Source: Rhodosorus marinus CCMP1338 (Eukaryota; Plantae; Rhodophyta). Taken from it: a stretch of 64,000 bases of DNA. The notes below the pieces were generated by a model. The model was not told the origin of the DNA and did not search any database. It saw only the letters and a program-made list of their open reading frames with translations. Position numbers and translations under genes: made by a program. The stretch spans positions 1,178,001-1,242,000 of the forward strand of contig JAMWBK010000004.1 in NCBI GenBank assembly GCA_029953675.1, written 5' to 3'. Shown here one piece after another: positions 10,343-40,583 of this stretch (position 1 is its first letter; each line of letters opens with the position of its first letter).

Positions 10343-11930
10343 CCACTAGTAAAGTCCAGTAGACACCAGTCCAGTAAAGCCATTCAGCACCTACCCGACA
10401 GCATGCTGCAATCGGCCTGCTTGCTTTCCGGCTTTTGTGCCGGTCCCAGACTCAACTACTGGTTGCGCAGCCTGCCTCCAGCTTGGGGCTCGTGGATCGC
10501 GGCTAAAGCCGACGAGATGACCCTGCAAAACTGGGGAACGCTCTTGGATGAGCTCCTCGATCTTGAAGCTGCTCCCGACAGGGACTTGATTCGTGCACAG
10601 ATCGCTCTACCGTTGCGATTAGGGGGATTCGGCGTCGCAGACCGTGGGCTGGTATGCTCGCGAGCGGCGGTTGCCTCCTGGGCTACCGCGCTGCGAACGT
10701 TGGTGACCTTCCAGATGCGAAGTGCCTGCCTCTTGGCTCGAGCTTTGACCAACGAGGATCCAGTGACCCTGCCGCCCCCGCTTTTGACAATTTATGATGG
10801 TCTTCAACACGCGTTCAGGAGGTGCTACGCCGTGCCGGACGCAAATCGGTCCCGCTTTCGTTCCTGGAGGGAGCTGATATGGGGACGAGCTGAAGCGTTT
10901 GAGGATTCTCCCCTCGACCGAGTTCTTGCCGATGACGGAGAGGCTAGCCCCGGGTCACCTGTTGCAGACTACCCGGGTTTGAGCCGATTGTGGAGCTCCT
11001 GCACTGATGTGATTCAACATAGCCTCACCTGTGGCCAACACAGTGCCGCTCACACAGTCATGCTCAATTCTCCTTTCACGCCGCCTACCACTGCCGCTCG
11101 TCTCCGCGGCATGGCAGGCCACCTCTCTCACTTGTGGTTAACCACTCTACCGTCGTCATTGAGTCATCGTCTCGATGCTTTCCAGTTCCGTTCTGCCGCA
11201 CGGATCTATCTCGGTTTGCCACAGGCTCCGTGGCACTCTAATCGGCCGTCTTTCTGTCAGGGATGTGAGAGCCGGATTGACGCTTGTGGCTACCACTTCC
11301 TGGGTTCCTGCGGACTGTTGAAAGGTCTCCGTACGAGGCGTCACACTCGCCTCAAGTACATCCTCAGCGAATTTTTGACTCGGATAGGGCATACGGTTGA
11401 GGTTGAGTCGGAACTGCCCAGATCAATCTCGGACTCTGCACCGCCCCGTTGTATAGCCGATCTCCTCGTCTCCGACGCTGCTGCCAGACGCTCAACATAT
11501 GTGGACCTTGCGATTACCTGCCCCGTGGCCAGCGCCCACCTCACCGCAGCCGCCCGCCGCCGGGGGGCCGCGGCTTCAGCCCTTCGAAGAGTTAAGGAAC
11601 GACGGTATGCTGAGAGCATGGCCAGTCTGCCTTGCGCTGAGGGTCGCTCTCACCGGTTCCAGCCATTCATTGTGGAAAGCTTTGGTCACGTCGATATGTC
11701 GGGTTTAGAGTGGTTGCGGAAATGTTTTGCTGAGCATCCTACGGAATATTTGGCGCTCTTGAGGCGTTTAAGTGTCTCCCTTTGGCGATATTCCAGCGAC
11801 ATGCTTTCCGAGGCGCGCCATCGGCGCCTGGGGTTGTATGCTTCCCTGCCTAGTTATTAGTTCATCTTCACGCCTTGCGTAGCGCTTCAGGCTATGCTAG
11901 TAAAGTCCAGTAAAGTCCAGTAAAGTCCAC
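10343..11930 (+). mobile_element. 5'-truncated RLE non-LTR retrotransposon, 'family B'
   Basis: Open 485-aa frame (10403-11860) homologous to the A ORF2 C-terminal half (RLNYWLRSLP, LPLRLGGFG, CQGC...HFLGSC, RRH, ADL, YVDLAI). ~38-nt 3' UTR, then (AGTAAAGTCC)x3. Confidence 0.93.
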
Positions 11931-12080
11931 TGAATGAGCACATTTTGTTAGCTTTTTACTCACTGTAGCGAAATTTTGGTGTGCATTTTTTGCTGGAATG
12001 GCGCATTCGTTGAGCATCCGGTAAATTCTGGATTTAGATTGGTGAAAATATACACAAAATGGACGTTGGGATTTGTTGGG

Positions 12081-12510
12081 CTTTACTGGACTTTACTGGA
12101 TTTTACTAGCATAGCCTGAAGCGCTACGCAAGGCGTGAAGATGAACTAATAACTAGGGAGGGAAGCATACAACCCCAGGCGCCGATGGCGCGCCTCGGAA
12201 AGCATGTCGCTGGAATATCGCCAAAGGGAGACACTTAAACGCCTCAAGAGCGCCAAATATTCCGTAGGATGCTCAGCAAAACATTTCCGCAACCACTCTA
12301 AACCCGACATATCGACGTGACCAAAGCTTTCCACAATGAATGGCTGGAACCGGTGAGAGCGACCCTCAGCGCAAGGCAGACTGGCCATGCTCTCAGCATA
12401 CCGTCGTTCCTTAACTCTTCGAAGGGCTGAAGCCGCGGCCCCCCGGCGGCGGGCGGCTGCGGTGAGGTGGGCGCTGGCCACGGGGCAGGTAATCGCAAGG
12501 TCCACATATG
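12081..12510 (-). mobile_element. 5'-truncated family B copy
   Basis: ORF 12146-12529 matches the B C-terminus. Tail repeats at 12081-12107. Likely 9-bp TSD ggatttgtt on both sides. Confidence 0.92.
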
Positions 12511-12884
12511 TGCTAGGATTTGTTTGCATCGATCGAAGTGAAATTTGGAGACAGATTCTATGCCCCTAAGATTAGTTTGATAAGCGACGCCGCTTGAGCT
12601 CCTTTCTCTTCGTTCTCTTCCTTCCCAAAGCCTGCTTCGTGAAGGTCCGCCAGTTTTTGTCTTTCAGTAATGCTGGCTCTCCGGTACTTGTAGTCGTCGG
12701 GCCCCGTCAGCTTGAACCATCTCAGGAAACATGTGACAGAATCCATACTCTTTGCTTTGTTTTCATCATCAGGCAAATTCTGGATTTAGATTTTGTTTTA
12801 TATCACAAAATGCATATTGGGAGTCTTTTCATACATCGAAGTGAAAACAGGGTACAGAGCCTGTATACTATATGAAGAGAATCT

Positions 12885-13215
12885 AGTGCAAGCGCTACGT
12901 AGGGTGTAAAAAGGAACTAGGAACTAGGGAAAAGCGTGCAACCCCGGGCGGCGCGGTGGCGCGAACTCAGTGAGCATGCTGCTAGAATATCGCCAAGGAG
13001 CGAAGCTTTATCTGCGTAGGAGTCTGAGACCTTCAACAAGGGTCAGTAAAAACATTTCCGCACTCACTCCAATCTTGACTGTTCCAGATGCCCAAAGCCT
13101 TCCACAATGCAAATCTGGAACCTTTGGGAACGGCCCTCTGCCCAGAGGGGACAGTCCATGCTCTCTGCACACTGTCGTTCCTTCGCCCTGCGTAGCATTT
13201 CAGGCCACGTACATA
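12885..13215 (-). mobile_element. Degenerate B-like 3' fragment
   Basis: Patchy similarity to the B 3' end (gcgctacg, gcatgctgctagaatatcgcc, aaaacatttccgc, ccaaagcttccacaatg). Confidence 0.65.
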
Positions 13216-13319
13216 AGATAAAGCAACTCCTGTGCAGGTATGGTCAGGCAATTTTGTCATTTCCCATCACCCGATTCAAAAAAATTTGGTGCAAGTTATT
13301 TATTCAAGTATGCTCATAA

Positions 13320-14729
13320 CTAGTTCCGTATAATCCCAGCAATGTCACCATATAGTCCCAATATTAGGGCCGTCAGTCCAAACATGATTATTACCACGCT
13401 AAGTGCGGTGAAAAGATGCTCCTTTCCCTTTCTCTCTCTAGCAAACGCATAAATATCAATACCCGCAGGCCAAAGCATCATGGTCTGAGAGGCAATCAGA
13501 GAAGAAATAAGAGCTAGATAGATCTTAAAAGATGGAATTACAGTATTCACAAGGGTTTCTAGCACAACCACGATGAGGGCCCATAAAAACCACCACAGCA
13601 ATGCCGCAGGTTTCAAACTCGTCAGTTTTGCAACCTTGTATGGACCGTTGTCTTTGCCAAAAACAATTCGTTTAACAAACGGTTCAGCAGCCCTCTGGAC
13701 CCCAGAAATCAGCACTTGACCCGTCACAATTATCGCAATCGCTGCGTGTATAACAACACAAACATCGGCTACGATCGCAGCTGCTCCTGGCTGAAGCGAG
13801 TTCGTGAATGGAGATACCAGCCACGTCGCATCTCCCGCAAGCCCGTACACTACAGAGCCAGTAGTCGCGTAGAACAGGTACGCAAAGGTCTGAGAAAAGA
13901 CCAACGAGTATGGAAAATTCTTAATAAACTTCATCGCGCTCATAATCTCGAGGAATACGACCGCACCGGCAAACGCGTACAGAATATCCATTGCAGCGAT
14001 TACGCAATCTGATGTTCCATAATACGAAAACAGTACTCGTTGCCCGACCGGATACGCTACTGGATCCTTCACCATGCTCGCAATCACGAAGAAGGAAATT
14101 ACAACTGGAATAATGATAGTCGCAATGGCGATGACAGAAGTGAACGCCATTGCCTTGAAGCTCCTGAGCTGCAATACAACAAGAGAGACGAATCCAGCGA
14201 TGACCATCCACTCTGTGAGAGATACGGTGGATCCGCTGAAAAGTGCACTCCATGCTTGAGCCTGTGTGTAGCTGAACGCGGCGGAGTACAAGAATAGGAG
14301 TGGATATGTGTTGAATCGAGCAAAAACCAACCCCTTCTTCCCAAAGGCACCGTTGAACAATTCCGGGTACGAATGCACTCCTTCGTACTTCTGGTATCGC
14401 AAGCGCCAAAGAAGGAAACCCGCACACATCGAGAGCACCCAGCACAGCAAAAGAGTAAGATGTCCTGGTATCCATCCTAGAGTCGCGAAAGCGTTTGGAA
14501 TGCTCAACACTCCCGTACCAACCATATCCACGACCAGCAAAAACATTGCAAGTGCAACACTCAGATTCTCGCAGGTATCATCTACGGCGTCTCCGCTCTC
14601 GATGTCTTTCCTATGTTCCACTGCTTCCTTCAAGTCATTAAGCGAGTCATCGGTGACACTGGCCACGTCCACAACGACGGCGCTCTTGAAGGTACACTCC
14701 TCACCAAGCCTAGAATCAACTGATGCCAT
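13320..14729 (-). CDS. Amino-acid permease (AAAP/Aa_trans family), copy 2, 469 aa, intronless
   Basis: Long multi-TM ORF with VGTGVLSIP..F..LGW..G and FAFAGAVVFLEI.S.MK-type motifs. Confidence 0.92.
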   Translation of the reverse strand: MASVDSRLGEECTFKSAVVVDVASVTDDSLNDLKEAVEHRKDIESGDAVDDTCENLSVALAMFLLVVDMVGTGVLSIPNAFATLGWIPGHLTLLLCWVLSMCAGFLLWRLRYQKYEGVHSYPELFNGAFGKKGLVFARFNTYPLLFLYSAAFSYTQAQAWSALFSGSTVSLTEWMVIAGFVSLVVLQLRSFKAMAFTSVIAIATIIIPVVISFFVIASMVKDPVAYPVGQRVLFSYYGTSDCVIAAMDILYAFAGAVVFLEIMSAMKFIKNFPYSLVFSQTFAYLFYATTGSVVYGLAGDATWLVSPFTNSLQPGAAAIVADVCVVIHAAIAIIVTGQVLISGVQRAAEPFVKRIVFGKDNGPYKVAKLTSLKPAALLWWFLWALIVVVLETLVNTVIPSFKIYLALISSLIASQTMMLWPAGIDIYAFARERKGKEHLFTALSVVIIMFGLTALILGLYGDIAGIIRN

Positions 14730-15044
14730 TTTTCTGCACTATTTTCATTCACAATATTTCTCAGTTACTGATGACGTCCTAAACAGGAGGCCAGACTTCA
14801 ACGCTGATGAGGTGTGACTATAAATCCTCTTCGTGAGAAGTTCGCATAGCATGTTCCTTGCCGAGTTCACCGTTGTGTCCATGTAGAGAATAGCTGATTG
14901 GATCTATCGCAAGCCTACGAAATCCCGAAATAGCACAAAAGTACTCATAGCTCTCCGGGAAGGAGCGCAAAGCGATCAGCTCATTGCGAGCGCTCACTGC
15001 CGCGAGCTAAGCGCATATTGATTGAACATGTGTGTCTTGTCCAC

Positions 15045-15061
15045 TGGACTGGACTTTACTT
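15045..15061 (-). mobile_element. 17-bp tail-only family B micro-insertion
   Basis: tggactggactttactt flanked by a 10-bp TSD tcttgtccac (15035-15044, 15062-15071). Confidence 0.75.
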
Positions 15062-16802
15062 TCTTGTCCACCGAGTCCATATCTTTATAAATCGATGGGG
15101 TTTCTCGAGAAGGTGAGTGGACTGCTAACTATTTCAGCAGACAATAGTCCATACCTAGCCATTTCCTCTGCTCTGTATGTTTTGAACTTGGGAACTCGAG
15201 AAACTCCTTCAAACCCCGCCTTCAATGCTGCACAAGTCCAGTTCTTCTTCTCCTAACTTGTTTCTACTATTATGGAGCAGATCATTTAGTCTGACATACA
15301 ACTTCTTGCTGGAGTTATCAGGCATGCAGGATCTAGCACCACGTTGTGTATCCAGGGGGGTACTTCAATTGTTGTGCCCGAACCCCTTCGTTTCGGAGGT
15401 TGTTTGTGAAGTATCCACAGCTAGTAACCCAAGACAAGGGCAGTCGAAGTGCAGCAAAAAAAACGATCATAATATTACTGTAAACGATACGCCCAATCAG
15501 AATAGTATTGTCAACTGCATTCCCATTCAAAACCAAACCTTCTCGCAGTCCACGCCAGTCCAAAAATATATACTAGACAAAATGCTCGTTTTCTCCGAGG
15601 AATGGTTTCTATTCGTAGAAAGGACCCGGGGAGAAATCAACAATGCCCCGAAGGCGATATCCTAGGCAACATCATAGCTGAAGTAGACTACCACCGCCTT
15701 TGTTTGCAGGTTTTACTGCCTCATATCTAGATCAGATTACTCCCACGCGGTCCGATTAAGTCTGAGTTACTACAACCACTACCACCTCCCGAGGGAGAAA
15801 AAAAAAATCGCGTCCCCTCAAACGTTGAAAAAGCGTTTATACGCCGCATGAGAATTCGGTTAAACGGCGAGGAGAGCGAGTCGAGGCTCTCACGGAACAT
15901 TTCGCAGTGCATATCTCTTGGTGTTAAAGCGCACGAAGAGTACCAGTGATGCACTGCGGTACGCAACTAACTGCTGAATAAAGTTTTCCTGCTAGAGCGC
16001 ACAAATAGTGCTCGTTGTTCGCTGCCCTGGGTAGCTGCTGAATAAAGGGTTGAACAGATCTGACTAGTTAATGGATATAACACGAGCTGTCAGCCTCTCC
16101 AAAAGAGAGCAAAGAGGTATCAGCCCCTCCTAAACAAGTCAAAGAGCTGTCAACGAGCAGCTAGGCAAACCCACCACCAACCGAGAAAAGTCCTGAATTT
16201 TTCTCCGTTCACGCTCGGAGAATTACTCGAAATACGATACGACGACAATGTCCCTTTTCACGCGAATATTGTTTTGCGCAACTTTTAAAGCAGTAGCTTA
16301 AAATAGTATGACGGGCCCAAGGGGAAAGGAACAACTGGAGAAAAACTTCAATACCGCGGCATCTATAAAAGTACTCTGAAACGGCAAAATATGCGATTAA
16401 GACCCTTTCTTTTTCACGAGCATTGTTTTTTAACAAAATTTGCTGTGGGAGCTTAAAATAGCTTTTTTCTAATTGATCCAGGAGAATGGGGCAATGAGGC
16501 ATGCCCCATTAAAGGGGCCAGCCGCATTACTACGGAAAAGCTGTCGATGGGTCACCCTCTCTTTTTAAGTTTACTTAATACATGTGGAAAGGCTGTCCCA
16601 GTTCTATACGCCCCCATACTACAAAATACAATATATTGAGCTTATTCTTACAAGGAAAAAAAGCTTTGATTGCAGGTTGCCAATTGAACTATTAAACTGA
16701 AACGTATTAGACTGGCAATAGGTAACTAAACCAATTCGTTTCATCCGGTATGGCGGTACTTATTTTAACGGGTTCGAGGGAACTTGTGCCTTATCGGATG
16801 GG

Positions 16803-17088
16803 ATATGCGGGGCCTTTGTCTCCCCCAGGCATTCGTGCTTCGGCTCTAGCTCCTCGCCCGGTACCTCTGGTCATTGAGTGCTTTGGGTTTCTGGATTCGG
16901 TTGGTTCTCGCTGGCTTCGGGAAGTATTCCGCGAACGCCCTGACCGTTCTGTCCTCGTTGTTTACTCGTTTAAGTTTCTTGCTGTGGCGTATGAACGCTT
17001 TGATTCTGGAGGGCGCGATCTTCGCCGCGTTTAGTCTTTTTTTCCCCTCGGGGTTTTTTCTTCCGTCTCCGATTACACAGATTCATTC
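16803..17088 (+). mobile_element. Older 5'-truncated A-like copy
   Basis: Translates VPLVIECFGFLDSVGSRWLREVFRERPDR. A-type 3' UTR and ATTC tail. 10-bp TSD atcggatggg (16793-16802, 17089-17098). Confidence 0.88.
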
Positions 17089-17288
17089 ATCGGATGGGCA
17101 AAACGGTTCAAATCAGTATCTCAACGAGCATAGAGCGTGCCCTATTACCGTTCCAATACATTTCAGCCGAATAATTTATTTGATAATAGGGCACGCCCTA
17201 TGCGGATGGCGGTAACTGATTTCAAAGGTCCCGCCTAAAGTTGTGCCCTATGATATGGACCAATGGTCGATTTCGACAGGCTTAAGCT

Positions 17289-17345
17289 TTGATACCTTAT
17301 ACGTGCCTTGATACCTTACACGTGCCTTGATACCTTATACGTGCC
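17289..17345. repeat. 19-bp tandem repeat x3
   Basis: ttgatacctta(t/c)acgtgcc three times. Confidence 0.9.
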
Positions 17346-18899
17346 CTATGGAGCACTATCGCCCATGGCAAGCTGTCTTCGTTGTGAAACACATAGAGCA
17401 GCTGAGGGGCTGTTGCATGGATTGCATAGGTCTCGAGCTGTTAAGACTGCTTCTGTTGGATTTTTTAAGGGCGTAAGAACAAAGAACACTGAATATGGTC
17501 TAGCAAGAGTGATTTGGCGGAGGCGTATCCGTTTAGCGGTTTTGAATCAGACGTTTATCTTCTTGTCAACTACTCGTTGATCAAGCGAAGAGCTCTTCGT
17601 GTTTGGAGAGCTGAGATGTACTGTGCTTGTTGGGCGCGTTACTTCTTGCAGTCGGTGTGAACCAGGAGACTTGCGGCTGAGGGCTTTCCTGGATAAGCCG
17701 CTTTTGGGGGGGTTATGTGTGGCTGTGGCTTGCCCCATTAACCATGTGGAGCATCTTTCGCGCTGCTTTCTGTTGCGGAGCATCTCTTCTAATGCGCTGT
17801 TTGTCTTCGTTTTCATGATCTCGGGCCTTTTGTCTTTGAGTACACGATGATGATGTTATAATACTACAGCATGCTTTTTTTTGAACATTGACTTCTCCAG
17901 TCTGGTCCTTTGATTCCTCGAATTCTTTCAAGATCTGTTCTTTCTCAGTCTCAGATTAATCAAATTCATTCAATCACGGATTTGCGAGGCTTACAATTAG
18001 AATTTATTTCATTGTAGTAAAGTGTCACCCTATTATAATCGGAAAATCTCAGAATTTTGACTACCATATATTATTATTTGGAATTTTAAAGCGTATTCAA
18101 TCTTTATAAGTGCGCATATTGAGGAGACGTATAAATTGAGTTATGGATCATATAGATTGGTTTGGGGGTATATTTTTTAATTCGTTGTTTATCTAGAAGG
18201 TAAGCTGTCCAAAACATGCTCGCTTTTAGTCGATCAAGAACCCTCTTTCACTCCCTCTCCGATTAAACCATTCGTTCTTTCCGGGAAGGGTCCTTACTGG
18301 AGCAGGGCAAATTCCGCGCATGGCGAACGCTTTGTGATGCGCACTTGAGCCCGTTGAAAAGCTGGTTCTACCCTGAACTCATGATGTTGTTAATGCCTAT
18401 GATTCTGTACAAGGTGTTAATGGAAAACAGGGCTGGGTCAAGCACCTACAACTGCTAGATTGTGGTGCGTTCGTTGAAGAGCGAAAGAGAGAAAGAGAGA
18501 GTGGGGCTGGATAAGTCCCTAGCCTCTGCATTAGCCGATTTGAAGACGTTTGAAAATTTCGAAGGACATTTTGTCTTACGCTTGGTTTGGCCAACTGTAA
18601 TGCACATAGTTTAATGCTCTGCTTCTCACCGCCTGAAAGGTGAATGCTTAAATGCTCGATGTAGAGGGCGATGCTTTCAAACAGCGGTACTGAGCTGGCA
18701 ATCAATGTTGCCCCAGCGCGGCTCCAGTCTACCACGTCACGCATCGATGACTGAAATCTTGTGCTGCGGTGCTGTACATGCTCGATAGATTTCAGCAGTA
18801 TGTGATATTGCGATTAGCTAAGCAAACTGTACTGTCCTCCCCTTCTATCGAACCATACTCACAACGAGCTGGTAGTGGTGGTGGTTTTACTTGCATAGA

Positions 18900-19245: not shown

Positions 19246-19364
19246 AGACCGGAGATTGATATTTTGCACTGGGCAAGTGACGGCGAGGTCATCATATTCA
19301 CAGTGTGGGTCGCACTATCCAAAAATATTAGTCCAACGGATTTATTCGGAAAGTGTACTAATAG

Positions 19365-20774
19365 CTAGTTATCTATAATCCCAACAATGCCACCATATAG
19401 TCCCAATATTAGGGCCGTCAGTCCAAACATGATTAGTACCACGCTAAGTACAGTGAAAAGATGCTCCTTTCCCTTTCTCTCTCTGGCAAACGCGTAAATA
19501 TCAATACCCGCAGGCCAAAGCATCATGGTCTGAGAGGCAATCAGAGAAGAAATAAGAGCTAGATAGATCTGAAAAGATGGAATTACAGTATTCACAAGGG
19601 TTTCTAGTACAATCACAATGAGGGCCCATAAGAACCACCACAGCAACGCCGCAGGTTTCAAACTCGTCAGTTTTGCAACTTCGTATGGACCGTTGTCTTT
19701 GCCAAAAACAATCCGTTTAACGAACGGTTCAACGGCCCTCTGGACTCCATAGATCAGCACTTGACCCGTCACAATTACTGCAATCGCTGCGTGTATAACA
19801 ACACAGACATCGGCTACGATCGCAGCTGCTCCTGGCTGAAGCGAGTTCGTGAATGGAGACACCAGCCATGTCGCATCTCCCGCAAGCCCGTACACTACAG
19901 AACCAGTAGTCGCGTAGAACAGGTATGCAGAGGTCTGAGAAAAGACCAACGAGTATGGAAAATTCTTAATAAACTTCATCGCGCTCATAATCTCGAGGAA
20001 TACGACCGCGCCGGCAAAAGCGTACAGCATATCCATTGCGGCGATTACGCAATCCGATGTTCCGTAATACGAAAACAGTACTCGTTGCCCAACCGGATAC
20101 GCCACTGGATCCTTCACCATGCTCGCAATCACGAAGAAGGAAATTACAACTGGAACAATAATACTCACAATGGCGATGATAGAAGTGAACGCCATCGCTT
20201 TGAAGCTCCTCAGCTGCAGTACAACAAGTGAGATGAATCCAGCGATGACCATCCACTCCGTGAGAGATACTGCGGATCCGCTGAAAAGTGCACTCCATGC
20301 TTTAGCTTGCGTGTAGCTGAACGCGGCGGAGTACAAGAATAGGAGTGGGTATGTGTTGAATCGGGCGAAAACCAACCCCTTCTTCCCAAAGGCACCGTTG
20401 AACAATTCCGGGTACGAATGCACTCCTTCGTACTTCTGGTATCGCAAGCGCCAAAGAAGGAAACCCGCACACATCGAGAGCCCCCAGCACAGCAAAAGAG
20501 TAAGATGTCCTGGTATCCATCCTAGCGTCGCGAAAGCGTTTGGAATGCTCAACACTCCCGTACCAACCATGTCCACGACCAGCAAAAACATTGCAAGTGC
20601 AACGCTCAGATTCTCGCAGGTATCATCTACGGCGTCTCCGCTCTCGATGTCTTTCCTATGCTCCACTGCTTCCTTCAAGTCATTAAGCGAGTCATCGGTG
20701 ACACTGGCCACGTCCACAACGACGGCGCTCTTCAAAGTACACTCCTCACCAAGCTTAGAATCAATTGATGCCAT
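19365..20774 (-). CDS. Amino-acid permease (AAAP/Aa_trans family), copy 3, 469 aa
   Basis: Co-linear and highly similar to copy 2. Confidence 0.92.
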   Translation of the reverse strand: MASIDSKLGEECTLKSAVVVDVASVTDDSLNDLKEAVEHRKDIESGDAVDDTCENLSVALAMFLLVVDMVGTGVLSIPNAFATLGWIPGHLTLLLCWGLSMCAGFLLWRLRYQKYEGVHSYPELFNGAFGKKGLVFARFNTYPLLFLYSAAFSYTQAKAWSALFSGSAVSLTEWMVIAGFISLVVLQLRSFKAMAFTSIIAIVSIIVPVVISFFVIASMVKDPVAYPVGQRVLFSYYGTSDCVIAAMDMLYAFAGAVVFLEIMSAMKFIKNFPYSLVFSQTSAYLFYATTGSVVYGLAGDATWLVSPFTNSLQPGAAAIVADVCVVIHAAIAVIVTGQVLIYGVQRAVEPFVKRIVFGKDNGPYEVAKLTSLKPAALLWWFLWALIVIVLETLVNTVIPSFQIYLALISSLIASQTMMLWPAGIDIYAFARERKGKEHLFTVLSVVLIMFGLTALILGLYGGIVGIIDN

Positions 20775-22857
20775 TTTTCTGCACTATTTTCATTCACAAT
20801 ATTTCTCAGCCACTGATGCCGTCCTAGACAGCAGGTCAGTCTTAAACGCTGATGAAGAGTGACTATAAATCCTCTTCGTGAGAAGTTCGCATAGCATGCT
20901 CGTTCCGGAGCTCGCTATTGTGCTCTGCGGGGAATAGCTGATCTCATCTACAGGAAACCTGCAAAATCCCGAAATAGCACCCAAGTATTCATAGCGCTCC
21001 GGGAAAGAGCCCGAAGTGATCAGCCCATTGCGTATGCTTACCGCCGTGAGCTAAGAGCATATTGGTTTAACTTGCTAGTCGCAATTGGCGGGTTCACATG
21101 TTTGTCAATCAATGGAGTTTATTGACAACATGAGTGGACACATGTTTATCAATCGATGGAGTTTCTTGATAAGATTCGTGGACTGCTAACTATCTCAGCC
21201 GACAGCAGTCCATTTCTACCTATCACGTTTTCCTAGCGCTATATGGGTTGAACTTCAAAACTCGAGAAAGTCCTTCCGAGCACGCGCAAGTCTCATCTTG
21301 TGCTGACTTGTTTCTACGATTATTCCGCAGGTCATGTGGTCCGAAATACAACTTGTTGCTAGGGTTACTAGGTGCGTAGGATCAAGCACCACGTTGTGTC
21401 AAGGGGGTTACTTCAGTTGCTGTGCTCCAAACCTTTCGTTGCGAGGGTTCTTCGTGGAATATCCACAGCGAGCAAAGCCGAAATTCGAAGTGCAGCAAGA
21501 ACCCAATCATAATAGAACTGTAAACGGTACGCCCAATCAGAATACCACTGTAACTCTGCGTCCAATCAAAAGCCAACCTCTCAGCAGGCCGTGTCAAGGC
21601 CCAAAAATATATATAATAGACAAAATGTTCGTTTTCTCGGAGGAACGTTTCTATTCGGAGAAAGAACCGAGGGAGAAAACAAAAATGGTACTGAAGGCGA
21701 TCTGCTAGCAGCATATTAACTGAGGTTGGTTTACCGGCGTCTTGGTTTGTATGTTTTACTGCCTTATGTCTAGTTTGCATTACTCCGTACCGCTTACGAC
21801 TGTGGCAGTAAACTACCACCACCACAACTAAAGGAGAAAATCGCGCGGTCTCCAAAACTGAAGCAGCGTTAATACGCCACGTGTGATTTCATTCATTCCT
21901 TCCATTAATACGGCACAACAGGAAACTTAAACGGATAAACTGCGAGGAGAGCCGGTCGCGTCGGCGGAACACCTCTCGCAATGCATTTCCTTTGGGGTGG
22001 CAAAGCCCGTGAGTGATAGCTTGTATGTTTTCATTCGAGTGCTAGTGGTGCGGTGCGTTGTGCGTTTTATTCAATAGACCTTCGGCTTTAGGTCATCGTC
22101 TGGTAGCTTTCTCAATTTAGTGTTTTGGCTTTATGGACTCCGTTGGTTGCCATTGGCTTCGCGAATTGTTCCTCTGAGCATCCCACACATGCTTTCCTCG
22201 TTTTCAACCCGTTTAGTCTTTCTTCAGTAATCTTTCTTCAGTCTCCAAATAGACACGTTCATTCGTGCTATGTAACGGCCGAATAAAAGTTTGCTGCTAG
22301 AGCAGACATAGTGCTACCAGTGCCCTGCGCGAGGTAACTGCTGAATAAAAGCTACAGGGTTGCTCAGATCTGACGAGCTTATTGGTTAAAACACGAGCCG
22401 TTTAGCCGTTAGCCTCTCCGAAACAAAGCAAAGGTTTCAGTCCCTCCAAAACAAGCTAAAGAGCTGTCAGAGGGAAGCATTGCAATAGAAAAATTTCCAC
22501 TTCTCCAGCTGGCGAAAATTGTTCTCTAAAATAGGATATGTACTCAATGAAAATGCTTTTTTACGTAATTTGCTGTAGGAGCTTAAAATAGAAACACGTG
22601 CCCTTTCGGAATGGAGAACTAAGAGAGAAAAATGCTGAAGGTCGGCATTTTTGGAAAAAGTACTCTAAAATGAGATATGGGGCGAGGCCCGTTTTTCAAA
22701 CAATCGTTGTTTTTAACCAATAATTTTTGGAAGAGCTTAAAATAGAATAACGGGCCCCCGGGGGCAATGGGGCAGCGAAGCATGCCTCATTAAAGGGGGC
22801 AGCCATACGGTAGTGTAAACTTTCGATGGGTCATAGTTGATTTTCTGGGCACAATGA

Positions 22858-23010
22858 ATGAATGAATTTACTTTATCGGAGGCTGAAAAAAACAAACCCG
22901 AGGAGCAAAAAAGGACTAAGCACGGCGAAGATCGCACGCCTCCAACATCAAAGCAGCGTTCATACGCCACAGCCAGAAACTTAACCGGGTAAACAACGAG
23001 GACAGACGGT
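22858..23010 (-). mobile_element. A-like 3' fragment
   Basis: gaatgaatgaat...atcggaggctgaaaaa...ggactaagcacggcg is the reverse complement of the A 3' end. Confidence 0.8.
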
Positions 23011-23224
23011 TAGTGCACTGGGGCAGGCCCGAAGATGAATGTATTCAATACATACATGAAAAAGTTGTACCATTGATATATGCTTTACTACAACGAAAAC
23101 AATATATCGATGTGAGAATAAATTGATTGCCCCATTGACAAATGAACTATTGAACTGAAATCCAATACAAAGATGGACCTGCTACTTGAAAGGCCGGCAG
23201 TCTTTCATGAACGGGTGTGATGCG

Positions 23225-25790: not shown

Positions 25791-26788
25791 CAGAGTTTTA
25801 GGTACTTCATTGAATGAATTTGTTTTATTGGATAAAGGCCACAGAAGACCAGCTTCTCAGCTTCTTCTGCAGCGAACCACACCCCCCAAATCAAGTATTG
25901 AATGAATCAAGTATTGTGGCATCAGAATCTGAACGAAGAGGTTGGAATCGTCGACATGGCTTCCCAATGAGGCCATTGTTCTTTTGAGGAATTGCGTCTA
26001 TTTATTCAAATTTGTTTATTTCTTAATGTCCGTACGAAGGTATTTATATCGGCGAAACATAGACTTCACTAGAGAGTCCTTTAGTGAAGTGTTCACGGTC
26101 AAATTGTTGCGACATATCACGCAGGTTGGACCCCTGGAGACCCTGAAAGCAACACTACTCTGGAGCCAGATTCTCTACCGACCATCGGAGCACAACTGCA
26201 ACCTTGGGAAGTGCTCACTCTTCGGCTGTCACCCTGCCCCCAGACTGCTCACCCGAGATACCTGTAGGCGTGACCGTTTCACGAGCGGGCGTGACCATCC
26301 ACTCCATCCGGATTGGGACAAGGCAATATGGAAGAAGCCCAACGACAACTGCAAAATACACATGCCAAACCTTTCGAGGAGATTGCACATACCTTCGTCC
26401 GCAAGAACTGACCACCTCTGTTGCGCTTTTAATCAGAGACTAGACCTGACTACACATTGCGGACACTGGCGTTTCAATTTGGGCGCACATTGGCACGCGA
26501 AGCGGACTCCCTGTCGAGGTTACATCTCGAATAGGTTACTTGGATGCTGTAAACTTCGGCTGAATAAGACCCGGATGGTACACACCCTGTCTGGAAGCAA
26601 GTGGAGTCTCTGCAGATGAGGTGGCCTGGGCTTTGTCACACGACGACGAACCCAACCTATTGCATTCTGTACTGGATGGTTTAATACTTCCAAGTTAATC
26701 AAGGGCACTGGCCCTGCCTAGAACTGGTCAAACAACGGACCCTCGAAGCTTCCCTACCAGCCGACAGCAAAACCCCCCTCGCCTACAT

Positions 26789-28292
26789 GGACTTTACTGG
26801 ACTTTACTAGCATAGCCTGAAGCGCTACGCAAGGCGTGAAGATGAACTAATAACTAGGGAGGGAAGTATGCAACCCCAGGCGCCGATGGCGCGCCTCGGA
26901 AAGCATGTCGCTGGAATATCGCCAAAGGGAGACACTTAAACGCCTCAAGAGCGCCAAATATTCAGTAGGATGCTCAGCAAAACATTTCCGCAACCACTCT
27001 AAACCCGACTTATCGACGTGACCAAAGCTTTCCACAATGAATGGCTGGAACCGGTGAGAGCGACCCTCAGCGCAAGGCAGACTGGCCATGCTCTCAGCAT
27101 ACCGTCGTTCCTTAACTCTTCGAAGGGCTGAAGCCGCGGCCCCCCGGCGGCGGGCGGCTGCGGTGAGGTGGGCGCTGGCCACGGGGCAGGTAATCGCAAG
27201 GTCCACATATGTTGAGCGTCTGACAGCAGCGTCAGAGACGAGGAGATCGGCTATACAACGGGGCGGTGCAGAGTCCGAGATTGATCTGGGCAGTTCCGAC
27301 TCAACCTCAACCGTATGCCCTATCCGAGTCAAAAATTCGCTGAGGATGTACTTGAGGCGAGTGTGACGCCTCGTACGGAGACTTTACTAGCATAGCCTGA
27401 AGCGCTACGCAAGGCGTGAAGATGAACTAATAACTAGGGAGGGAAGCATGCAACCCCAGGCGCCGATGGCGCGCCTCGGAAAGCATGTCGCTGGAATATC
27501 GCCAAAGGGAGACACTTAAACGCCTCAAGAGCGCCAAATATTCAGTAGGATGCTCGGCAAAACATTTCCGCAACCACTCTAAACCCGACTTATCGACGTG
27601 ACCAAAGCTTTCCACAATGAACGGCTGGAACCGGTGAGAGAAACCCTCAGCGCAAGGCAGACTGGCCATGCTCTCAGCATACCGTCGTTCCTTAACTCTT
27701 CGAAGGGCTGAAGCCGCGGCCCCCCGGCGGCGGGCTGCTGCGGTGAGGTGGGCGCTGGCCACGGGGCAGGTAATCGCAAGGTCCACATATGTTGAGCGTC
27801 TGGCAGCAGCGTCGGAGACGAGGAGATCGGCTATACAACGGGGCGGTGCAGAGTCCGAGATTGATCTGGGCAGTTCCGACTCAACCTCAACCGCATGTCC
27901 TATCCGAGTCAAAAATTCGCTGAGGATGTACTTGAGGCGAGTGTGACGCCTCGTACGGAGACCTTTCAACAGTCCGCAGGAACCCAGGAAGTGGTAGCCA
28001 CAAGCGTCAATCCGGCTCTCACATCCCTGACAGAAAGACGGCCGATTAGAGTGCCACGGAGCCTGTGGCAAACCGAGATAGATCCGTGCGGCAGAACGGA
28101 ACTGGAAAGCATCGAGACGATGACTCAATGACGACGGTAGAGTGGTTAACCACAAGTGCGAGAGACGGCCTCCCATGCCGAGGAGACGAGCGGCAGTGGT
28201 AGGCGGCGTGAGAGGAGAATTGAGCATGACTGTGTGAGCGGCACTGTGTTGGCCCCAGGTGAGGCTATGTTGAATCACATCAGTGCGGGAGC
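26789..28292 (-). mobile_element. Two head-to-tail 5'-truncated family B copies (26789-27380 and 27381-28292)
   Basis: ORFs 26847-27332 and 27427-28317 are near-identical to the B C-terminus. The tail of the right-hand copy abuts the truncated 5' end of the left-hand copy. Confidence 0.93.
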
Positions 28293-28492
28293 TATGACGG
28301 AACAACTCCGTACGCAAATCCTCTGCGCAAGCGCAGGGAAACGGAGAAGGCTCGGGGAGGAAACTCTTCCGAGCAGCCTGCTGGTTGAGGGTTAATAGAG
28401 CCTCCTAGGATTGCAATTTGTTCTTCCTTGTATATGGAATCATGTTTTTACTTTGAAACGGGACTGGGCAGATTCTTCGAAAAGTTGAGCTC

Positions 28493-29053
28493 TCAAGCCA
28501 TACCTGCTTTGCAAGCCTCTAGATCAGCTTCAAGCGTTAGGACGAGGAGCTTTTTTGCATCTCTTTGCTCTTCTATGTCGGCGACCACTGACTCCCGTGC
28601 TTCAAAGCGGCTCCTATACAGATCGGCTTGGGCTTGCGCCTTTTCAATCTTACCGATTCTGAAATCGATCGTAGCCTGCCTGCGGTCAATTTTCGCCTGG
28701 AACTCAGCTATTCGAACGATGTTACGGGCGATCCTTTCTTCCTTGTCGTCCGAGGATATCTCCCCTGCCAATAGTTTCCTGTTTATCTCCTCAAATCTTG
28801 CCAGCCATCCTTCCGAGATAGATCTCTGCTCAATTAGCCGACCAAGGTATACTTCGTTTTGTCTGGCCTTGTCCTCCCAACTACGTATTCTGCGACCGAC
28901 ACGGCGTTGTATTTGCCGCAATTCTACTAGCTCATTCGCAAGACCTCCGAGGGAGGTTTTGCTCCTACCAAGCTCCTTCATAAGCTCGTCACATTCTCCG
29001 AGCGCTATTCCAACCGACAGGAATATCAACACGCAGGCGATTTGCGGCTTCAT
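28493..29053 (-). CDS. Hypothetical secreted coiled-coil protein, 186 aa
   Basis: ATG start, signal-peptide-like N-terminus (MKPQIACVLIFLSVGIALG), E/K/R/A-rich helical body. Confidence 0.65.
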   Translation of the reverse strand: MKPQIACVLIFLSVGIALGECDELMKELGRSKTSLGGLANELVELRQIQRRVGRRIRSWEDKARQNEVYLGRLIEQRSISEGWLARFEEINRKLLAGEISSDDKEERIARNIVRIAEFQAKIDRRQATIDFRIGKIEKAQAQADLYRSRFEARESVVADIEEQRDAKKLLVLTLEADLEACKAGMA

Positions 29054-30409
29054 CTCAGTTGTGTGGATTCGTGAAATGACCCCAAAAACGCGCAGACAAT
29101 TTTCATGGTTAACCTATTCTGACCACCAGTCTCCTCGTCTCTGCTTCTCCCCCTCACCTCAGTCCCACTTATTCTACGAAACGTACCCAGTGCGACTTGA
29201 GGACCTAATCACATACAACTTCCATAAGCCGACTCTTATATAGAGCAAGCTACCCAGAATTCCATTGACTTCAATCGCAATATACAAGCCACTATACGAG
29301 CCGCACTGTTTAGATTAAGATTTAGCCAAGCTCTCTCGAGTTCTAGTCCTCACACAATGCATCAGTCCCAAACCAGCTGTGAGAAAGAAAAACTCAAAAC
29401 ACCCCGCTACGCGAATTGTTACGAGTTTAGCCGCATCCAGAATTACACACACCTCCATCTAGGAGTGCGCACAACTCCGTCCAGAGGAGTACACGTAAAG
29501 CCAGTCGCTCCCAGAAGCATATCTGTAAACAGCACGCTATACATTAATTTGAATGAATCTGTTTCATCGGAAATTAGTTTGGGGTCAGTAGTCCACCCAC
29601 TCATCCAGTTTGGGGTTAGGACTTTGGAATATTGACGCTGTAATGCTGAAGTTGGATTCTTTAAAAGCGGTTGATTTGCATATATGACATTACGAGAGGC
29701 TTTGCCTGCAGATGGATGGGGCTCGGAAACTGAACCCGAAGATCACCCCCTTCGAGCACCAACGCTGTTTCCATACAAGAACAAAATTAGCAGGAGTTCA
29801 TATTCTGGTAAGCTTTTTCTTCCAAATTCAAACCACTGGGGGAGGCGAGTGTCCTAAGGGGCGACTCTCCCCAATTGAGAGCTTGGGTGAGGACAATTAC
29901 TTGCACAAACTTCACGGTCCAATGGGGGGCTCCCTACATAAAATTCTCAAGAGCGACCTACGTAAAAACTGGAATCCCCCCTTGGACCACCCAGGAAAGG
30001 GTTAGATTCCTCATCTGTAGCATCTTGTTTTACAATATTGTATATTGTGGTCTTTCATAGTGTGTAGCAGTCTATCTTCTTTTAAGATAATTTCGTCGTG
30101 TGTGTTGCGATAATTGGAGCGCTGGCTCCGGTTTGAGAAGATTTGAGATTGGATGTTTTGACTTTCCTAGGGTGTCTGGATACTTTACCATAATTCGATG
30201 ACTGGCGCTCAAGGCGAATACTGTGCGGCAACAGCACTTTCCAGCTGGTAATTCTGGTATTTTCTCTGGGTGAGAACAACGTAGAGCTTACAGTTCGATT
30301 CTGAAAGGGATGTTCGAGAAGAGCCCCTTTTTTGAAGATAATCAAGATTGCTTGTGGGAGTGGCGCCCGTCAGGTACGTATCAATTAGAAAGATTGCTGC
30401 CAAAAAACA

Positions 30410-30597
30410 CACTGATGATTCGGGAGTTGTTCCGCCAACGCCCTGACCGCCTGTCCTCGTGGTTTACCCATTTAAGTTTCTTGCTGGGGCGTATGGCGCT
30501 GCTTTGATGCTGGAGGTGCGCGATCTTCGCCGCGCATAATTTGTTCTTCCCCCTCCGGGGTTTTTCTTTCACTATCCGATTAAACAAATTCATTCAG
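30410..30597 (+). mobile_element. A-like 3' fragment
   Basis: IRELFRQRPDRLSSWFTHLSFLL and the tail ccgattaaacaaattcattc. Confidence 0.8.
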
Positions 30598-31090
30598 ATA
30601 GATCTACTGTCCATCGGTTTTCGGAAACCGCATCACACAAAAAAGTCAAACCCGAATCAACCCAGAACTGTTGGTTGATAAAAAAAAGACCATCCATCTA
30701 AAAACAGCAAGGGGCTCGTCTAGGTTGGATGCTGAAGAAATTCGTAAGACGATCGGTTGACCAGTCTGTATCATTCAGTCAATATCAGCTGTCGGAAGTG
30801 GCGTTTTGTTTTTCGTTTGGGGTATACTTTCGTGAAGCTTCCTGGAAGGACCGTTGCGAGTTTGCCCTCGGCTACCTGAGGGCAGAGTATCCGAGAACGA
30901 ATTGAGCAACTGAACTCAACTCTTTGCATCCAAGCCTCTCTGCATTTCGGCAATACGCGAATGGGTTTGTTTCGCCAGCGTACTCATCGGATGGATAGAT
31001 GGGTGGATGGCACGCCTATCTCGCCATTCCCATCGATAGTCCCCGAACTGCAGCGAATATAGTCTTCTTGGCTCGGAGTAACTTCAATCT

Positions 31091-31265
31091 TGACGTGATC
31101 CTCATAGAATCGACGGTGTCCCGATTTGCACTAGGAGCAGGGTAAGTCAGCCTTGACGAGCTCCTCGTAGAATCGCGGAATCCCGAATTGCACTAGGAGC
31201 AGGGTAATTTCAGCCTTGCGTGCTCCTCATAGAATCGAGGAATCCCGAATTGTACTAGGAGCAAG
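31091..31265. repeat. ~62-bp tandem repeat x3 inside a probable decayed gene on the minus strand
   Basis: cctc(a/g)tagaatcg...cccga(a/t)ttg(c/t)actaggagca three times. Minus-strand units read LLLVQFGIPRFYEE in shifting frames. Confidence 0.8.
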
Positions 31266-33896
31266 GTTTTCTTGGTCAGTCATTTCCCCGTCCAACCCCC
31301 GGGGATCCAGACACCATGCGAATAGTGGATTTCAGCCACGATATCGTTGACCTTCCGCTTGAGGAGCGCTACTACGTCCGATCGCCGTTCGTGATTCGCA
31401 ATGAACCAGACTCAACGAAGTTGAATAGCCGGGCCCACGGGAGTGCTACATAGCCTGGATGAATCGTTCTCGTCTCCGCCAAAGCTTAGACCAGAGTCAG
31501 TGATTGGCCCATCCAGTACATGGTGTCCATAGTCCTCCATAACAGCTCATCCAAGAGAATTGTCTGAAGCTTCTCCATGGACTTCATCTTTCGGAATTTC
31601 TGCTACAGGACGGAGCATTTGATCCATTCCTCGATCTTGAGCAGCTGCCCGAATACAACCAATAGCGAGTACCACCTGGTGACTGTTGTGCAGCCACACT
31701 GCAATAGCTTGCTTCCCCGTGCTTGTGGCAATGTCCTTCCGGAGAGCGCTGCTTCTTCGGATCATCTTCGCCACGTGAAATGAACTGTCCGAAATCTCTC
31801 CGAACTTTCCTACTTTGACCATGACTGCTCGGACAAGAAGGTTGGTCTGATGAGCCAAACAAGTACCTACGCGAACACAAATCCAAATTCAATACCTCAA
31901 ATCTGTAATCCAAAGTGTTCGTAACGAACATACGTCTCGAAGAGAGGGCGAACTAGTCATCAAGTAATAAGCCAGCACCATAAGAACGAGGTTTACCATC
32001 GACAAGTACGTAGCTGGAAACAGTACTTTCTAAACATAATTTAATCGGCTACTAAACAAGCGTCAAAGAACGATCGAAAGAGTTATCCTATCCGTGCGCT
32101 GCGAAATTGCTTATTTGCGATTAACCCTCTCCCGTAGGACTCCACGACCAGTCGCCTCGCCTTGTCGGTCGTAAGGCCGACAATAGTCCCTCTACCTGCC
32201 TGATTGTCTCGAGAATATCCTTCGACAGCTTCTCTGCTGTTGCAGTAACAGGAGAGGAATGCAAGTCCGGCAGACAGAGTTGCCCATCTTCCCTCACACT
32301 GGCCACGCTAAGCGTGCTCACCAGCGACCGTTGTCCAACCATCCACCACGATTGTGCATTTCTTGGGACTGTTCAGGAAGCCTGCCAACTCCTTTTCGCC
32401 ATTTCCAACAAGCTGTCCAGTGTACTACCCGCGAGTGTATGCCTATCCGGTATCGCCGCGTCGAACTGAAAACCCGTTGCCTAGTCCCGAAAGTAAGGGA
32501 AGTTTGCAACACTACACCCAGAAACGGACGCAAGTGGGTCAGCCTCCAGAACGCAACAATTAGTTCCCGCGCTATCCCTCTCTGTATGGGAATTGCCGAG
32601 TGTGAGCCAAGGATTTGTAGGGATTGGAGCAAGTTTAGTTAAACGAAACAATCCCCATAGTCAGGGTCAGCAGGAGCTCTCATTCTGCTTCATTCTTTCG
32701 GGAGGGGACATCCTCCTGCAGTTAAAATTCTCTACGCCGGATTCCGAACGCATCCGTGCACGCGGAGACGCGACTCCCAGAGCCCAGTCCACCATCAGGA
32801 GGATCACGAGGGACCTCTTTTTCCTCAGCAATCACAGGATCAAGCGCGGCAGGCACAGGACCAGCAGCTGTTTTTTCGCGGGGCCGCGAGCCCGGGAAAA
32901 ATCGGCTTGCCAGCCGCCAGCCGCCAGCCGCCAGCCGCCAGCCGTGGGTGCGGTCGGCAGGGAGACTGGTACAAGATGACATCGCCGATTGGAGCTCGAG
33001 AAACAAACCGCGGGCACTTTCAGAGACGCTAGAGTAGTAAAACCACACCAGAGTGTAGATCATCGCTGGAAAGACTGAACAATATCGGAAACTAGACACC
33101 CAACGCGCTCAACGTCGGGAGGGAGGTGCCCCAAGACCCAACCACGGCCGCTGGTTGGGTAAAAGCTCGGTTAAAGAGGCCTAGACCGCCTAGTCGTAGG
33201 GGTAGGCCCACTTGGGCACGAACGATATCACGGGTGGGGCACTGAAAATGACCCAACTCCTCATCTAAGAAATATACCAGCTCTCCAAAGCTCTCGTCGT
33301 CGGCACGGGTTGCTAGCCACCGGCCCAAGGGAGTCGGGAGCGAGCGGAACCAATAGGTGAGCCGCTGACCGCAACAATATCAGTACAGCAACAACGAAAA
33401 TAGCAAGAAGCCGCGAGGCAGCCGACCGAGCTCCGAGACCAGTTGCCGGTGTTTTCTCAGAATTTGCGGCAACACACCCTCCACAAACGACGCGGACCCA
33501 CAGAGGGTGCCCAGGTGGACAAACCCTGCCCGGCGCAAATATCCCGGAAACGCGCGGGGTCCTGCTGCTCTTGAATATCCACTCCTCCCCAGTAGAACGA
33601 CTTCGCATGATTGACTTCGAGATCGACGAGGGATGCCAGTGTGTGGAGACGATCGTCAGCCACCGCGAGGGTATCTGGAGGCTCAATGAGGCAGACATCA
33701 TCGTGGCAACCCACTGTGCGGACCTCCGGGAACTCTGAACGCAGGCTAAGCAAAACGACCTGAAGCCCACACGCGGGCAAAAAAGACGCCAACGGGTCAC
33801 CCTGTTGAACCCCGGTCCGCGACTCGAGGGAGTGCGAGGAAGGGCCGAGGGGTGCCATAAGTTGTCCCTTGACCCATCAAAAGAGAAAAGGCTACT

Positions 33897-34095
33897 GGAC
33901 TGGACTTTACTAGACTTGGACTTTACTGGACTTTACTAGCATAGCCTGAAGCGCTACGGGGGAAAAGTCGCTTGCGCGACGAAAAAAATTCTTGATGCGC
34001 GAGTGTTGGTAGCTAAGCCCGGTCTCCTTTAGTAAAAAGCGAAAAGAGAGTTCGTACAAGACAGAGCTACCTCGCGGACTTTACTAGCATAGCTG
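33897..34095 (-). mobile_element. Chimeric retro-insert: B 3' stub + U5 snRNA copy + B 3' end and tail
   Basis: 10-bp TSD aaaggctact at 33887-33896 and 34096-34105. Removing the insert restores continuity of the host A-like sequence. Confidence 0.85.
33967..34075 (-). ncRNA. U5: U5 snRNA copy (retro-pseudogene)
   Basis: Minus strand has the stem UCUCUUUU/AAAGGAGA closing the 11-nt loop CGCUUUUUACU (canonical CGCCUUUUACU). It also has internal-loop ACGAAC and CCG, outer helices GGUAGCU/AGCUACC and GCGAG/CUCGC, an Sm-like AAUUUUUUUC, and a 3' hairpin GUCGC-GCAA-GCGAC. Confidence 0.85.
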
Positions 34096-35548: not shown

Positions 35549-35719
35549 ATTGATACGCGCCACCCTGCTCCTGAACCCTCGAAAACGGGTTCACCGTCCT
35601 GTTCCCCAATAAAAATGTGGCAAGGCCATTAAAATTTACACCCGAACCCATCCAAATGCTAAACGGACGAAGTGGAATCGTCTATTCCTGTATCCCCGAC
35701 TAATTCGGCTCTGGCTCAT

Positions 35720-40557: not shown

Positions 40558-40583
40558 GACTTTACTAGCATAGCCTGAAGCGC
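40558..40583 (-). mobile_element. 26-bp family B micro-insertion
   Basis: gactttactagcatagcctgaagcgc flanked by tactctg (40551-40557, 40584-40590). Confidence 0.8.

Follow-up and report, generated by a model that had tools for sequence, protein, structure and literature searches.

Tandem junctions of a putative R2-type retrotransposon in the red alga Rhodosorus marinus: probable insertion into older tails and a U5 snRNA chimera

In Chlorella, the Zepp element forms clusters in which the poly(A) tails of older copies house further ones. The R1 tandem arrays of Drosophila ribosomal DNA (rDNA) are attributed to insertion into the target-site duplication (TSD) of an earlier copy, and their members are separated by a TSD (PMC2718515). 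Among elements that carry a restriction-like endonuclease, many are directed at repeats, microsatellites among them (PMC4640811). Other junctions arise when two templates are joined: R2 insertions in human cells ('PRINT') are reported to include U6 fusions, classed as 'extra template', and 5' junctions of a 'tandem insertion' class (PMC11371274), and template-switch chimeras of long interspersed elements (LINEs) are represented by U6/L1 in mammals and by WEIRD/Mg-SINE/MGL in Magnaporthe (PMC4476161, PMC2104539). SINEU joins a small nuclear RNA (snRNA) head to a LINE 3' recognition end (PMC4494074). Here we describe family B, a retrotransposon in a 64,000-nt window of nuclear DNA from the red alga Rhodosorus marinus (GCA_029953675.1, contig JAMWBK010000004.1; the assembly is tied to this species in PMC10250338). 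At three places in the window, junctions (i), (ii) and (iii), B tail sequence stands directly upstream of a further insertion, and the original prediction took this as a record of frequent end-to-end template jumping by a CRE-like element. We conclude that B probably inserts into the tails of older B copies, which would account for most of these tail-before-body junctions, and that its machinery switched templates at least once, to U5 snRNA.

All B copies share one 3' end: a 7-bp hairpin, GCGTAGC-gcttcag-GCTATGC, followed by a T and one to three units of AGTAAAGTCC, often closed by a trailing A or a half unit, AGTCC. In normal tails a T stands ahead of AGTAAAGTCC only at the boundary of unique sequence and tail. 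The hairpin is the centroid fold, and in a relative on another contig (L002, below) a G-to-A change converts a G-U pair to A-U. Allowing at most one mismatch, AGTAAAGTCC occurs 19 times in the window against 3.5 expected, a number reached in none of 100 shuffles, and every exact match lies at a B end, in a mini-B or in a tail-only B insertion. The tail-unit pattern at B ends is not chance. Separately, the exact 10-mer gctagtaaag, which matches the B unique/tail boundary, stands isolated at 34508-34517 (+) with no other B sequence nearby; about 0.1 such matches are expected by chance, and it could be a micro-insertion or a coincidence.

We collected B 3' ends from 133 kb of R. marinus DNA: the window; L002 (JGI 3300016967, Ga0186194_100052, 1-5040), a 5-kb transcriptome-type contig; and L003, L004 and L005, loci of 21 kb each that were reached through paralogues of the Aa_trans transporter. 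This sample holds 19 B-type 3' ends, six of which directly adjoin another B 5' end downstream. The tail/body arrangement recurs outside the window, in L002 at 3622/3623 and in L003 at 3922, 3557 and 7663.

Two of the L003 tandems give decisive evidence: in each, a unit of the older tail is mutated. In the first (minus strand, 3680 to 3380), the older of the two copies, 72% identical to B, finishes with ...caggctatgttAGTAAAACC and gives way to a younger one of 135 nt (97.5%), which ends ...gctagtaaagtcc and is followed by AGTAAAACC again and the flank accatc. In the second (minus strand, 7860 to 7580), an old copy (73%) ends gctAGTAAAAGCC; after 7 additional nt (agcgaat) comes a mini copy of another subfamily (tail taataaagcc; ...gctaataaagcc), then AGTAAAAGCC again and the flank aattgg. 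The downstream copies are bracketed by AGTAAAACC...AGTAAAACC and AGTAAAAGCC...AGTAAAAGCC, in each case the variant tail unit of the older copy. Since a variant unit that flanks the younger copy is a separate TSD taken from the old tail, we conclude that these two tandems are serial insertions into an existing tail. Template jumping predicts no inner TSDs of this kind. Its expectation that tandem copies share one TSD pair fails here, and again at (iii), where CTAGTAAAGTCC is repeated.

The order of divergence agrees. In no tandem pair is the upstream member less diverged from the B reference than its downstream partner: 72 versus 97.5% identity and 73 versus 100% in L003 (the latter barely informative, its downstream mini being only 21 nt), 86.9 versus 93.0% in L002, and 97.9 versus 98.8% for c4 and c3, the two members at junction (ii). 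The downstream bodies begin at different points in each tandem (B positions 10380, 11322, ~10693, 11780, 11741 and 11878).

All three junctions in the window are real, with predicted coordinates off by no more than 1 nt. At junction (i), a tail block (Table 1) does run into the ccattcag body, directly abutting it at 10380 (ccattcagc); only the end of the block had been placed 1 nt too high, and belongs at 10379. Relatives in L002 and L004 extend upstream of the equivalent of 10380 (...gacgccattgagc), and hence B copy 1 is 5'-truncated at that point. By the same comparison, the AAAG microhomology proposed for this junction shrinks to a tail/body overlap of one G. At junction (ii), on the minus strand, c4 ends ...gctagtaaagt and directly meets c3 at ctccgtacg, where the intact body reads ttgaaaggtctccg. 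The copies are indeed joined at agtaaagt/ctccg, but neither is whole: c4 is ~914 nt and c3 ~600 nt, and both are 5'-truncated. Nor could any jump have been end to end, since the downstream units of (i) and (ii) begin at internal body positions and not at the RNA 5' end. The block of (i) could be a tail copy added by a jump, or the left-hand portion of a tail-only B insertion that was there before. Under nested insertion, the older target at (i) would be the tail-only sequence tagtaaagtcc agtagacacc agtcc agtaaagtcc a, with agtccagtaaag as the inner TSD; at (ii), a single unit would have made up the c4 tail, and the inner TSD would be AGTAAAGTC. Because neither junction has a diagnostic variant unit, both fit nested insertion and a single-event jump alike.

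Junction (iii) lies within A2, a decayed element like those of a second retrotransposon family, A. The tail at 34076-34095 (minus strand cagctatgctagtaaagtcc) directly precedes the U5 copy, as had been predicted. Rfam identifies that copy, 33965-34078, as a U5 snRNA of full length (RF00020; model positions 1-117; 61.4 bits against a gathering score of 40). At the corresponding uninterrupted site (4013-4022), agtagacttt is present once in family A; hence AGTAGCCTTT, which stands at both ends of the composite insertion, is a true 10-nt TSD. Nested within AGTAGCCTTT...AGTAGCCTTT, the U5-B unit has a 12-nt direct repeat, CTAGTAAAGTCC, on each side (34087-34076, 33913-33902). If the inner unit and one repeat are removed, agctatgctagtaaagtccagtcc is left between two AGTAGCCTTT copies, and this remnant ends like the tail-only insertions at 15045-15061 and L004 4546. 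Because the boundary T otherwise occurs only where unique sequence meets tail, the most plausible reading of the downstream CT-AGTAAAGTCC is that it duplicates part of an older mini-B. Most simply, then, (iii) comprises two events: insertion of a mini-B, followed by insertion of a U5-B chimeric cDNA into the tail of that mini-B.

Within the chimera, the 3' end of U5 is followed by ttcccc and then by a B fragment whose first nucleotides (cgtagcgc...) lie exactly at the base of the hairpin, where the minis at window 40586 and L003 7663 also begin. It has the features of a LINE-type chimeric retrocopy: a full-length small RNA, fusion at its 3' end, a 5'-truncated B 3' end, one orientation, and direct repeats. 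These features are the hallmark of a real template switch from B RNA to U5 snRNA, the only such case among the junctions. The proposal that B machinery jumps thus holds for at least one switch, from B to U5, whereas B tail before B body is better explained by serial insertion. No further snRNA copies were found in L002-L005 and one U5-B unit was seen in the 133 kb. We treat it as a one-off chimera because only one copy was found in the sequence available.

Why should B land in its own tails? Its TSDs outside tails are AGTAGCCTTT, AGTTTCTTGCTG, AGCTAAGGCC (at c7, whose tail unit is AGCAAAAACC), (A)GTGGACAAGA, AGAGTA, AACAAATCC and ATAATT. Away from tails the duplications open with AGT, AGC or AG, in keeping with the first letters of the tail unit, and for 1-4 nt from their start they stay in the register of the tail (mean ~2.8 nt versus ~0.3 nt by chance, counted from the TSDs listed). 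We take this to suggest pairing between the nicked target and the RNA tail ahead of reverse transcription. B RNA would end in the short hairpin and the repeat AGUAAAGUCC, and a nicked target strand would prime best where its 3' end pairs with the start of the repeat (AGT..., in RNA AGUA...). The DNA tails of earlier B insertions would be hot spots, because they offer perfect pairing. New copies, usually 5'-truncated, would be set inside older tails and give rise to head-to-tail tandems with the old tail directly upstream of the new body. The reverse transcriptase (RT) may often stop at the 5' base of the hairpin, leaving 'mini' copies; there it may once have switched to U5 snRNA, and the resulting U5-B cDNA would have inserted into the tail of an older mini-B inside the A-like element.

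Several points weigh against nested insertion as the explanation. Junctions (i) and (ii) have no variant tail unit, and their inner 'TSDs', agtccagtaaag and AGTAAAGTC, are indistinguishable from ordinary tail. Neither model accounts for the unit agtagacacc of (i); the aagt irregularity in the tail of (iii) is likewise unexplained. Over the 573 nt common to c4 and c3, private substitutions number 7 and 2, a difference that is not significant (two-sided p ~0.18), and the greater divergence of upstream members could reflect subfamily instead of age. Both CTAGTAAAGTCC copies at (iii) are B sequence anyway and a three-jump model could yield them, although that model gives no reason for a TSD-like repeat length of 12 nt. 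The folding energy of the hairpin is not significant (z = -0.62).

Among the alternatives, the one that survives best is a single-event jump, in which B RT leaves one B RNA for the 3' tail of a second (at (iii), for U5 and then B) and makes one concatemeric cDNA. R2-type enzymes jump in vitro, and in cells they produce head-to-tail 'tandem insertion' junctions and U6 fusions (PMC11371274). The U5-B junction shows that B machinery can switch templates. The junctions show 1-3 nt of microhomology with no added nt, and they fall at a recurrent place in the tail, after TAGTAAAG(T), at (i), (ii), L003 3922 and possibly (iii). In addition, only one outer repeat pair, ATAATT, flanks the L003 composite at 3887-5147; nested insertion, however, also predicts just one outer TSD pair, and the observation does not discriminate between the models. 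Set against these points are the inner TSDs made from a mutated tail unit, the boundary T within the 12-nt inner repeat of (iii), and the consistently greater divergence of upstream members, two of which share only ~72-73% identity with B, against at least 97.5% for their partners. We consider a single-event jump unlikely. Still less probable, in our judgment, is a broader version in which B RT frequently switches RNA templates in vivo with the 5' base of the 3' hairpin as the preferred switch point, so that (i), (ii), the minis and the tail-only insertions would be aborted or multi-template products. If true, it would make this locus a natural genomic record, in a red alga, of R2-type jumping including U5 capture, and such capture could seed a short interspersed element (SINE) with a U5 head.

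Perhaps the upstream 'tail' was tail-like host sequence chosen by B, merely a TSD with no earlier B insertion? B TSDs do begin AGT or AG like the tail unit, and the L002 composite has gtaaagtccagt just upstream of its long B copy and tagtaaagttca downstream. Family A also seems to choose tail-like targets, because its copy at 36483 has ttcattca (A tail) just upstream of the 5' junction as well as at the 3' end. However, in (ii), in (iii), at L002 3622 and in three L003 cases, B unique sequence (gctatgc, or a copy in full) adjoins the upstream tail, which therefore derives from B. Exact AGTAAAGTCC was not found in the window away from B-derived insertions, and the 33-nt block of (i) is far longer than the 6-12-nt TSDs of the family. 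Host sequence is thus a very improbable source of these tails. Origin of the tandems after insertion or at the RNA level, by unequal recombination, gene conversion or retrotransposition in trans of a read-through transcript, is just as hard to credit: B-containing read-through transcripts exist (L002; the transcriptome sequence P0002) and c3 equals c5 over 267 nt, but each tandem has its own downstream breakpoint and none copies another, which argues for independent events, and recombination would not create inner TSDs. Serial insertion into older tails remains the explanation that we favor.

B is, judged from its sequence, a retrotransposon of the non-LTR (LTR, long terminal repeat) type that inserts by target-primed reverse transcription, with RT followed by a CCHC motif and an R2-type endonuclease region. 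An RT is encoded, the 19 3' ends are common while their 5' start points differ, there are no LTRs, and TSDs are short (6-12 nt at c2, c6, c7, the solo tail, insertion (iii) and the L003 copies). The RT domain RVT_1 is carried by the B-type copy of L002 (gene 1645-2055), which is decayed and longer than the window copies, and by the open reading frame (ORF) of family A at 3114-5978 (Pfam). In protein sequence, the B ORF shares 37% identity with the C-terminal half of the A ORF. The best solved-structure (PDB) matches of family A are R2 proteins (E = 1e-12), a second match covering the R2 CCHC/endonuclease stretch; to this stretch the B ORF aligns weakly (E = 0.77), with the motif C..C...H.LG.C...G.R.RRH conserved. 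Pfam found no Exo_endo_phos (apurinic/apyrimidinic endonuclease) domain. These data suggest that B belongs to the restriction-like-endonuclease (R2-type) group. The support reaches no further than that group, and 'CRE-like' stays an unverified label; no spliced-leader gene, the target of the CRE clade, was among the B insertion sites in the sequence examined. Those sites are the A-like element, spacer of the Aa_trans array, older B tails and others.

A homologue search of the protein collection with the B ORF returned two Rhodosorus transcriptome-type sequences only, one of them (P0002) from the MMETSP Rhodosorus transcriptome; hence B-containing RNA exists. L002 joins on one contig a host gene, a decayed B tandem (1466-3790) and a gene on the opposite strand, and R. 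marinus RNA contains B sequences at least as read-through. There was no match in an exact look-up of the B ORF, in a metagenome DNA scan for the B 3' end or in a protein-guided metagenome scan for B. Database relatives of family A elsewhere are at most 34% identical and include proteins of the red alga Pyropia.

Table 1. Coordinates of features in the window (positions count from the first nucleotide of the window).
Feature	Position	Strand	Remarks
Junction (i) block, 33 nt	10347..10379	+	units tagtaaagtcc / agtagacacc / agtcc / agtaaag; reads tagtaaagtccagtagacaccagtccagtaaag
B copy 1	10380..11929	+	longest B copy in window; 5'-truncated inside ORF (10403-11860)
B copy 1, 3' end	11877-11897 (hairpin); 11898-11929 (tail)	+	tail T(AGTAAAGTCC)x3 A
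B copy c2	12069..12524 (body 12077-12511)	-	ordinary insertion, not in a tail; TSD AACAAATCC at 12069-12077 and 12516-12524; 4 additional nt (tagc) at 5' junction
Tail-only insertion aagtaaagtccagtcca	15035..15071 (insert 15045-15061)	-	between two copies of GTGGACAAGA
B copy c3	26788..27385	-	downstream member of tandem (ii); 5'-truncated at B position 11322; two-unit tail
B copy c4	27380..28293	-	upstream member of tandem (ii); tail cut after ctagtaaagt(c) where c3 starts
A2, decayed A-like RT element	32746..34333	-	hosts composite insertion (iii); interrupted at one point
Composite insertion (iii)	33887..34105	-	TSD1 AGTAGCCTTT at 34105-34096 and 33896-33887
(iii), 5' part	34095-34076	-	ca + gctatg + CTAGTAAAGTCC
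(iii), U5 snRNA, 114 nt	34078-33965	-	then ttcccc 33964-33959
(iii), B hairpin and tail	33958-33914	-	cgtagcgcttcaggctatgctagtaaagtccagtaaagtccaagt (cgtagcgc...agtccaagt)
(iii), 3' part	33913-33902; 33901-33897	-	CTAGTAAAGTCC; agtcc
B copy c5	34812..35080	+	269-nt 3' fragment; two-unit tail; flank begins AGTTTAAG
B2-subfamily copy c6	35838..36258 (body 35848-36249)	+	85% identical to B; within older family A copy; 12-nt TSD AGTTTCTTGCTG at 35838-35849 and 36247-36258
Mini-B	36692..36724	+	hairpin + one tail unit (ctgcgtagctgttcaggctatgctagtaaatcc)
Mini-B	40557..40586	-	begins at hairpin base (gtagcgcttcaggctatgctagtaaagtcc); (C)AGAGTA on each flank
Diverged B copy c7	41104..42006 (body 41114-41988)	-	~80% identical; tail unit AGCAAAAACC; TSD AGCTAAGGCC; 8 additional nt (atagaaga) at 5' junction
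Family A, near full-length RT element	~1102-6040	+	ORF 3114-5978
Family A fragments	6486-6835(-), 16803-17089, 22855-23016(-), 30419-30596, 35704-35849 + 36247-36362, 36483-36652, 42336-43363		
Aa_trans array segments	1-1101, 13280-15743, 19321-21786, 36755-38314		window begins inside a fourth copy
Complete Aa_trans ORFs, 469-475 aa	13320-14729, 19365-20774, 36777-38204	-	

The window contains an array of amino-acid transporter genes (Aa_trans, by Pfam), tandem or segmentally duplicated, with retrotransposon debris between them; the repeat copies are 84-96% identical, and the spaces among the genes hold many copies of the two related families, A and B. Look-ups of two ORFs near the window end gave no match. 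The paralogous array copies bear on the solo tail at 15035-15071, where they show a 27-column gap equal to a 17-nt insert plus a 10-nt TSD; their flanks have diverged, and the gap is consistent with an insertion. No TSD pair was found for the c4+c3 composite, for c5 or for copy 1, whose flanks share CCACT(G) only, too short to trust as a TSD. Apparent homology of c5 reaching to 34750 was a tblastn artefact.

A candidate full-length B at 26783-23218 (-), its 5' end abutting the c3 tail, was not established; the sequence there is an old, internally deleted A/B-like element. This decayed element (~25800-23218, minus strand) keeps an ORF1-like part (24963-24493) and the start of the RT ORF as far as a PGPSG motif (~23390). 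From there it passes straight into the final ~190 nt of a B-like 3' end (23442-23218); an internal deletion has removed the whole RT and endonuclease region. B copies are also found tail to tail: copy 1 and c2 lie 147 nt apart, and the copy at L003 5147 faces an old B-like tail 9 nt away.

Family A ends ...cccctcgggg-T run-cagcctccgattaaaccattcattca, and its 5'-truncated copies have clean 9-nt TSDs (GAAGACACT, TCGGATGGG). It too has a head-to-tail pair (42336-42500 and 42500-43363, plus strand), made up of an old fragment (80% identical to A) and a young 5'-truncated copy (98%). The break in the old copy falls within its 3' T-run (cccctcggggtttt), with the young one attached immediately after it. 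Simple nested insertion fails for this pair, because the last ~35 nt of the old copy were not found after the young copy. Two family A 3' ends (5682-6036 and 6486-6835) form an inverted pair 450-510 nt apart, with 322 nt at 100% identity. A tRNA T-arm-like motif, gggattcgaacccaca (43392-43408), lies directly after the A copy end at 43363; neither ARAGORN nor Rfam reported a tRNA there. Self-comparison also revealed local tandem duplications at 57789-58163 (~187-nt units at 81%) and 31089-31267 (~63-nt units at 87%), which appear unrelated to families A and B.

B is apparently an undescribed and unannotated red-algal family, with close relatives only in Rhodosorus data and the nearest other database proteins at ~34% identity. 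Both behaviors that we ascribe to it are already known in principle, from R1 arrays, from U6/L1 and Magnaporthe chimeras and from the junction classes of R2 'PRINT', and the value of the present case is therefore mainly descriptive. B resembles the R2, R4, NeSL, HERO and CRE elements in the order of its RT, CCHC and R2-type endonuclease regions, in target-primed insertion with 5' truncation and in its structured 3' end; its 5' junctions, with microhomology or a few extra nt, may be compared with those in PMC2718515. It differs from them in lacking one fixed target, such as rDNA, spliced-leader or snRNA genes; its varied sites have in common only an AGT-like start. It also differs in making 6-12-bp TSDs and in its 10-nt tandem-repeat tail.

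As in R1 arrays, the head-to-tail order of B tandems would arise because an earlier insertion recreates or supplies the preferred target. Unlike R1 and Zepp, B would find that target in its own 10-nt repeat tail and not in a host-gene TSD or poly(A), and its arrays are short, with two members each. A tandem-repeat tail can thus make the past insertions of a retrotransposon its preferred landing sites; damage is then limited to junk DNA, and small head-to-tail clusters form. Finding a tail at a 5' junction is not sufficient ground to infer template jumping. The U5-B unit is like the LINE chimeras in that a full-length snRNA copy is joined, in the same orientation, to a 5'-truncated 3' end at a preferred switch site and is flanked by direct repeats. 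Unlike the U6 chimeras, it has U5 as the partner, an element of the restriction-like-endonuclease type and a red-algal host, and it is nested in the tail of an older mini-B. It differs from SINEU in being a single copy, without evidence of a repeated family. It represents a clean natural chimeric retrocopy of an snRNA, U5, made by an R2-type element outside animals and fungi.

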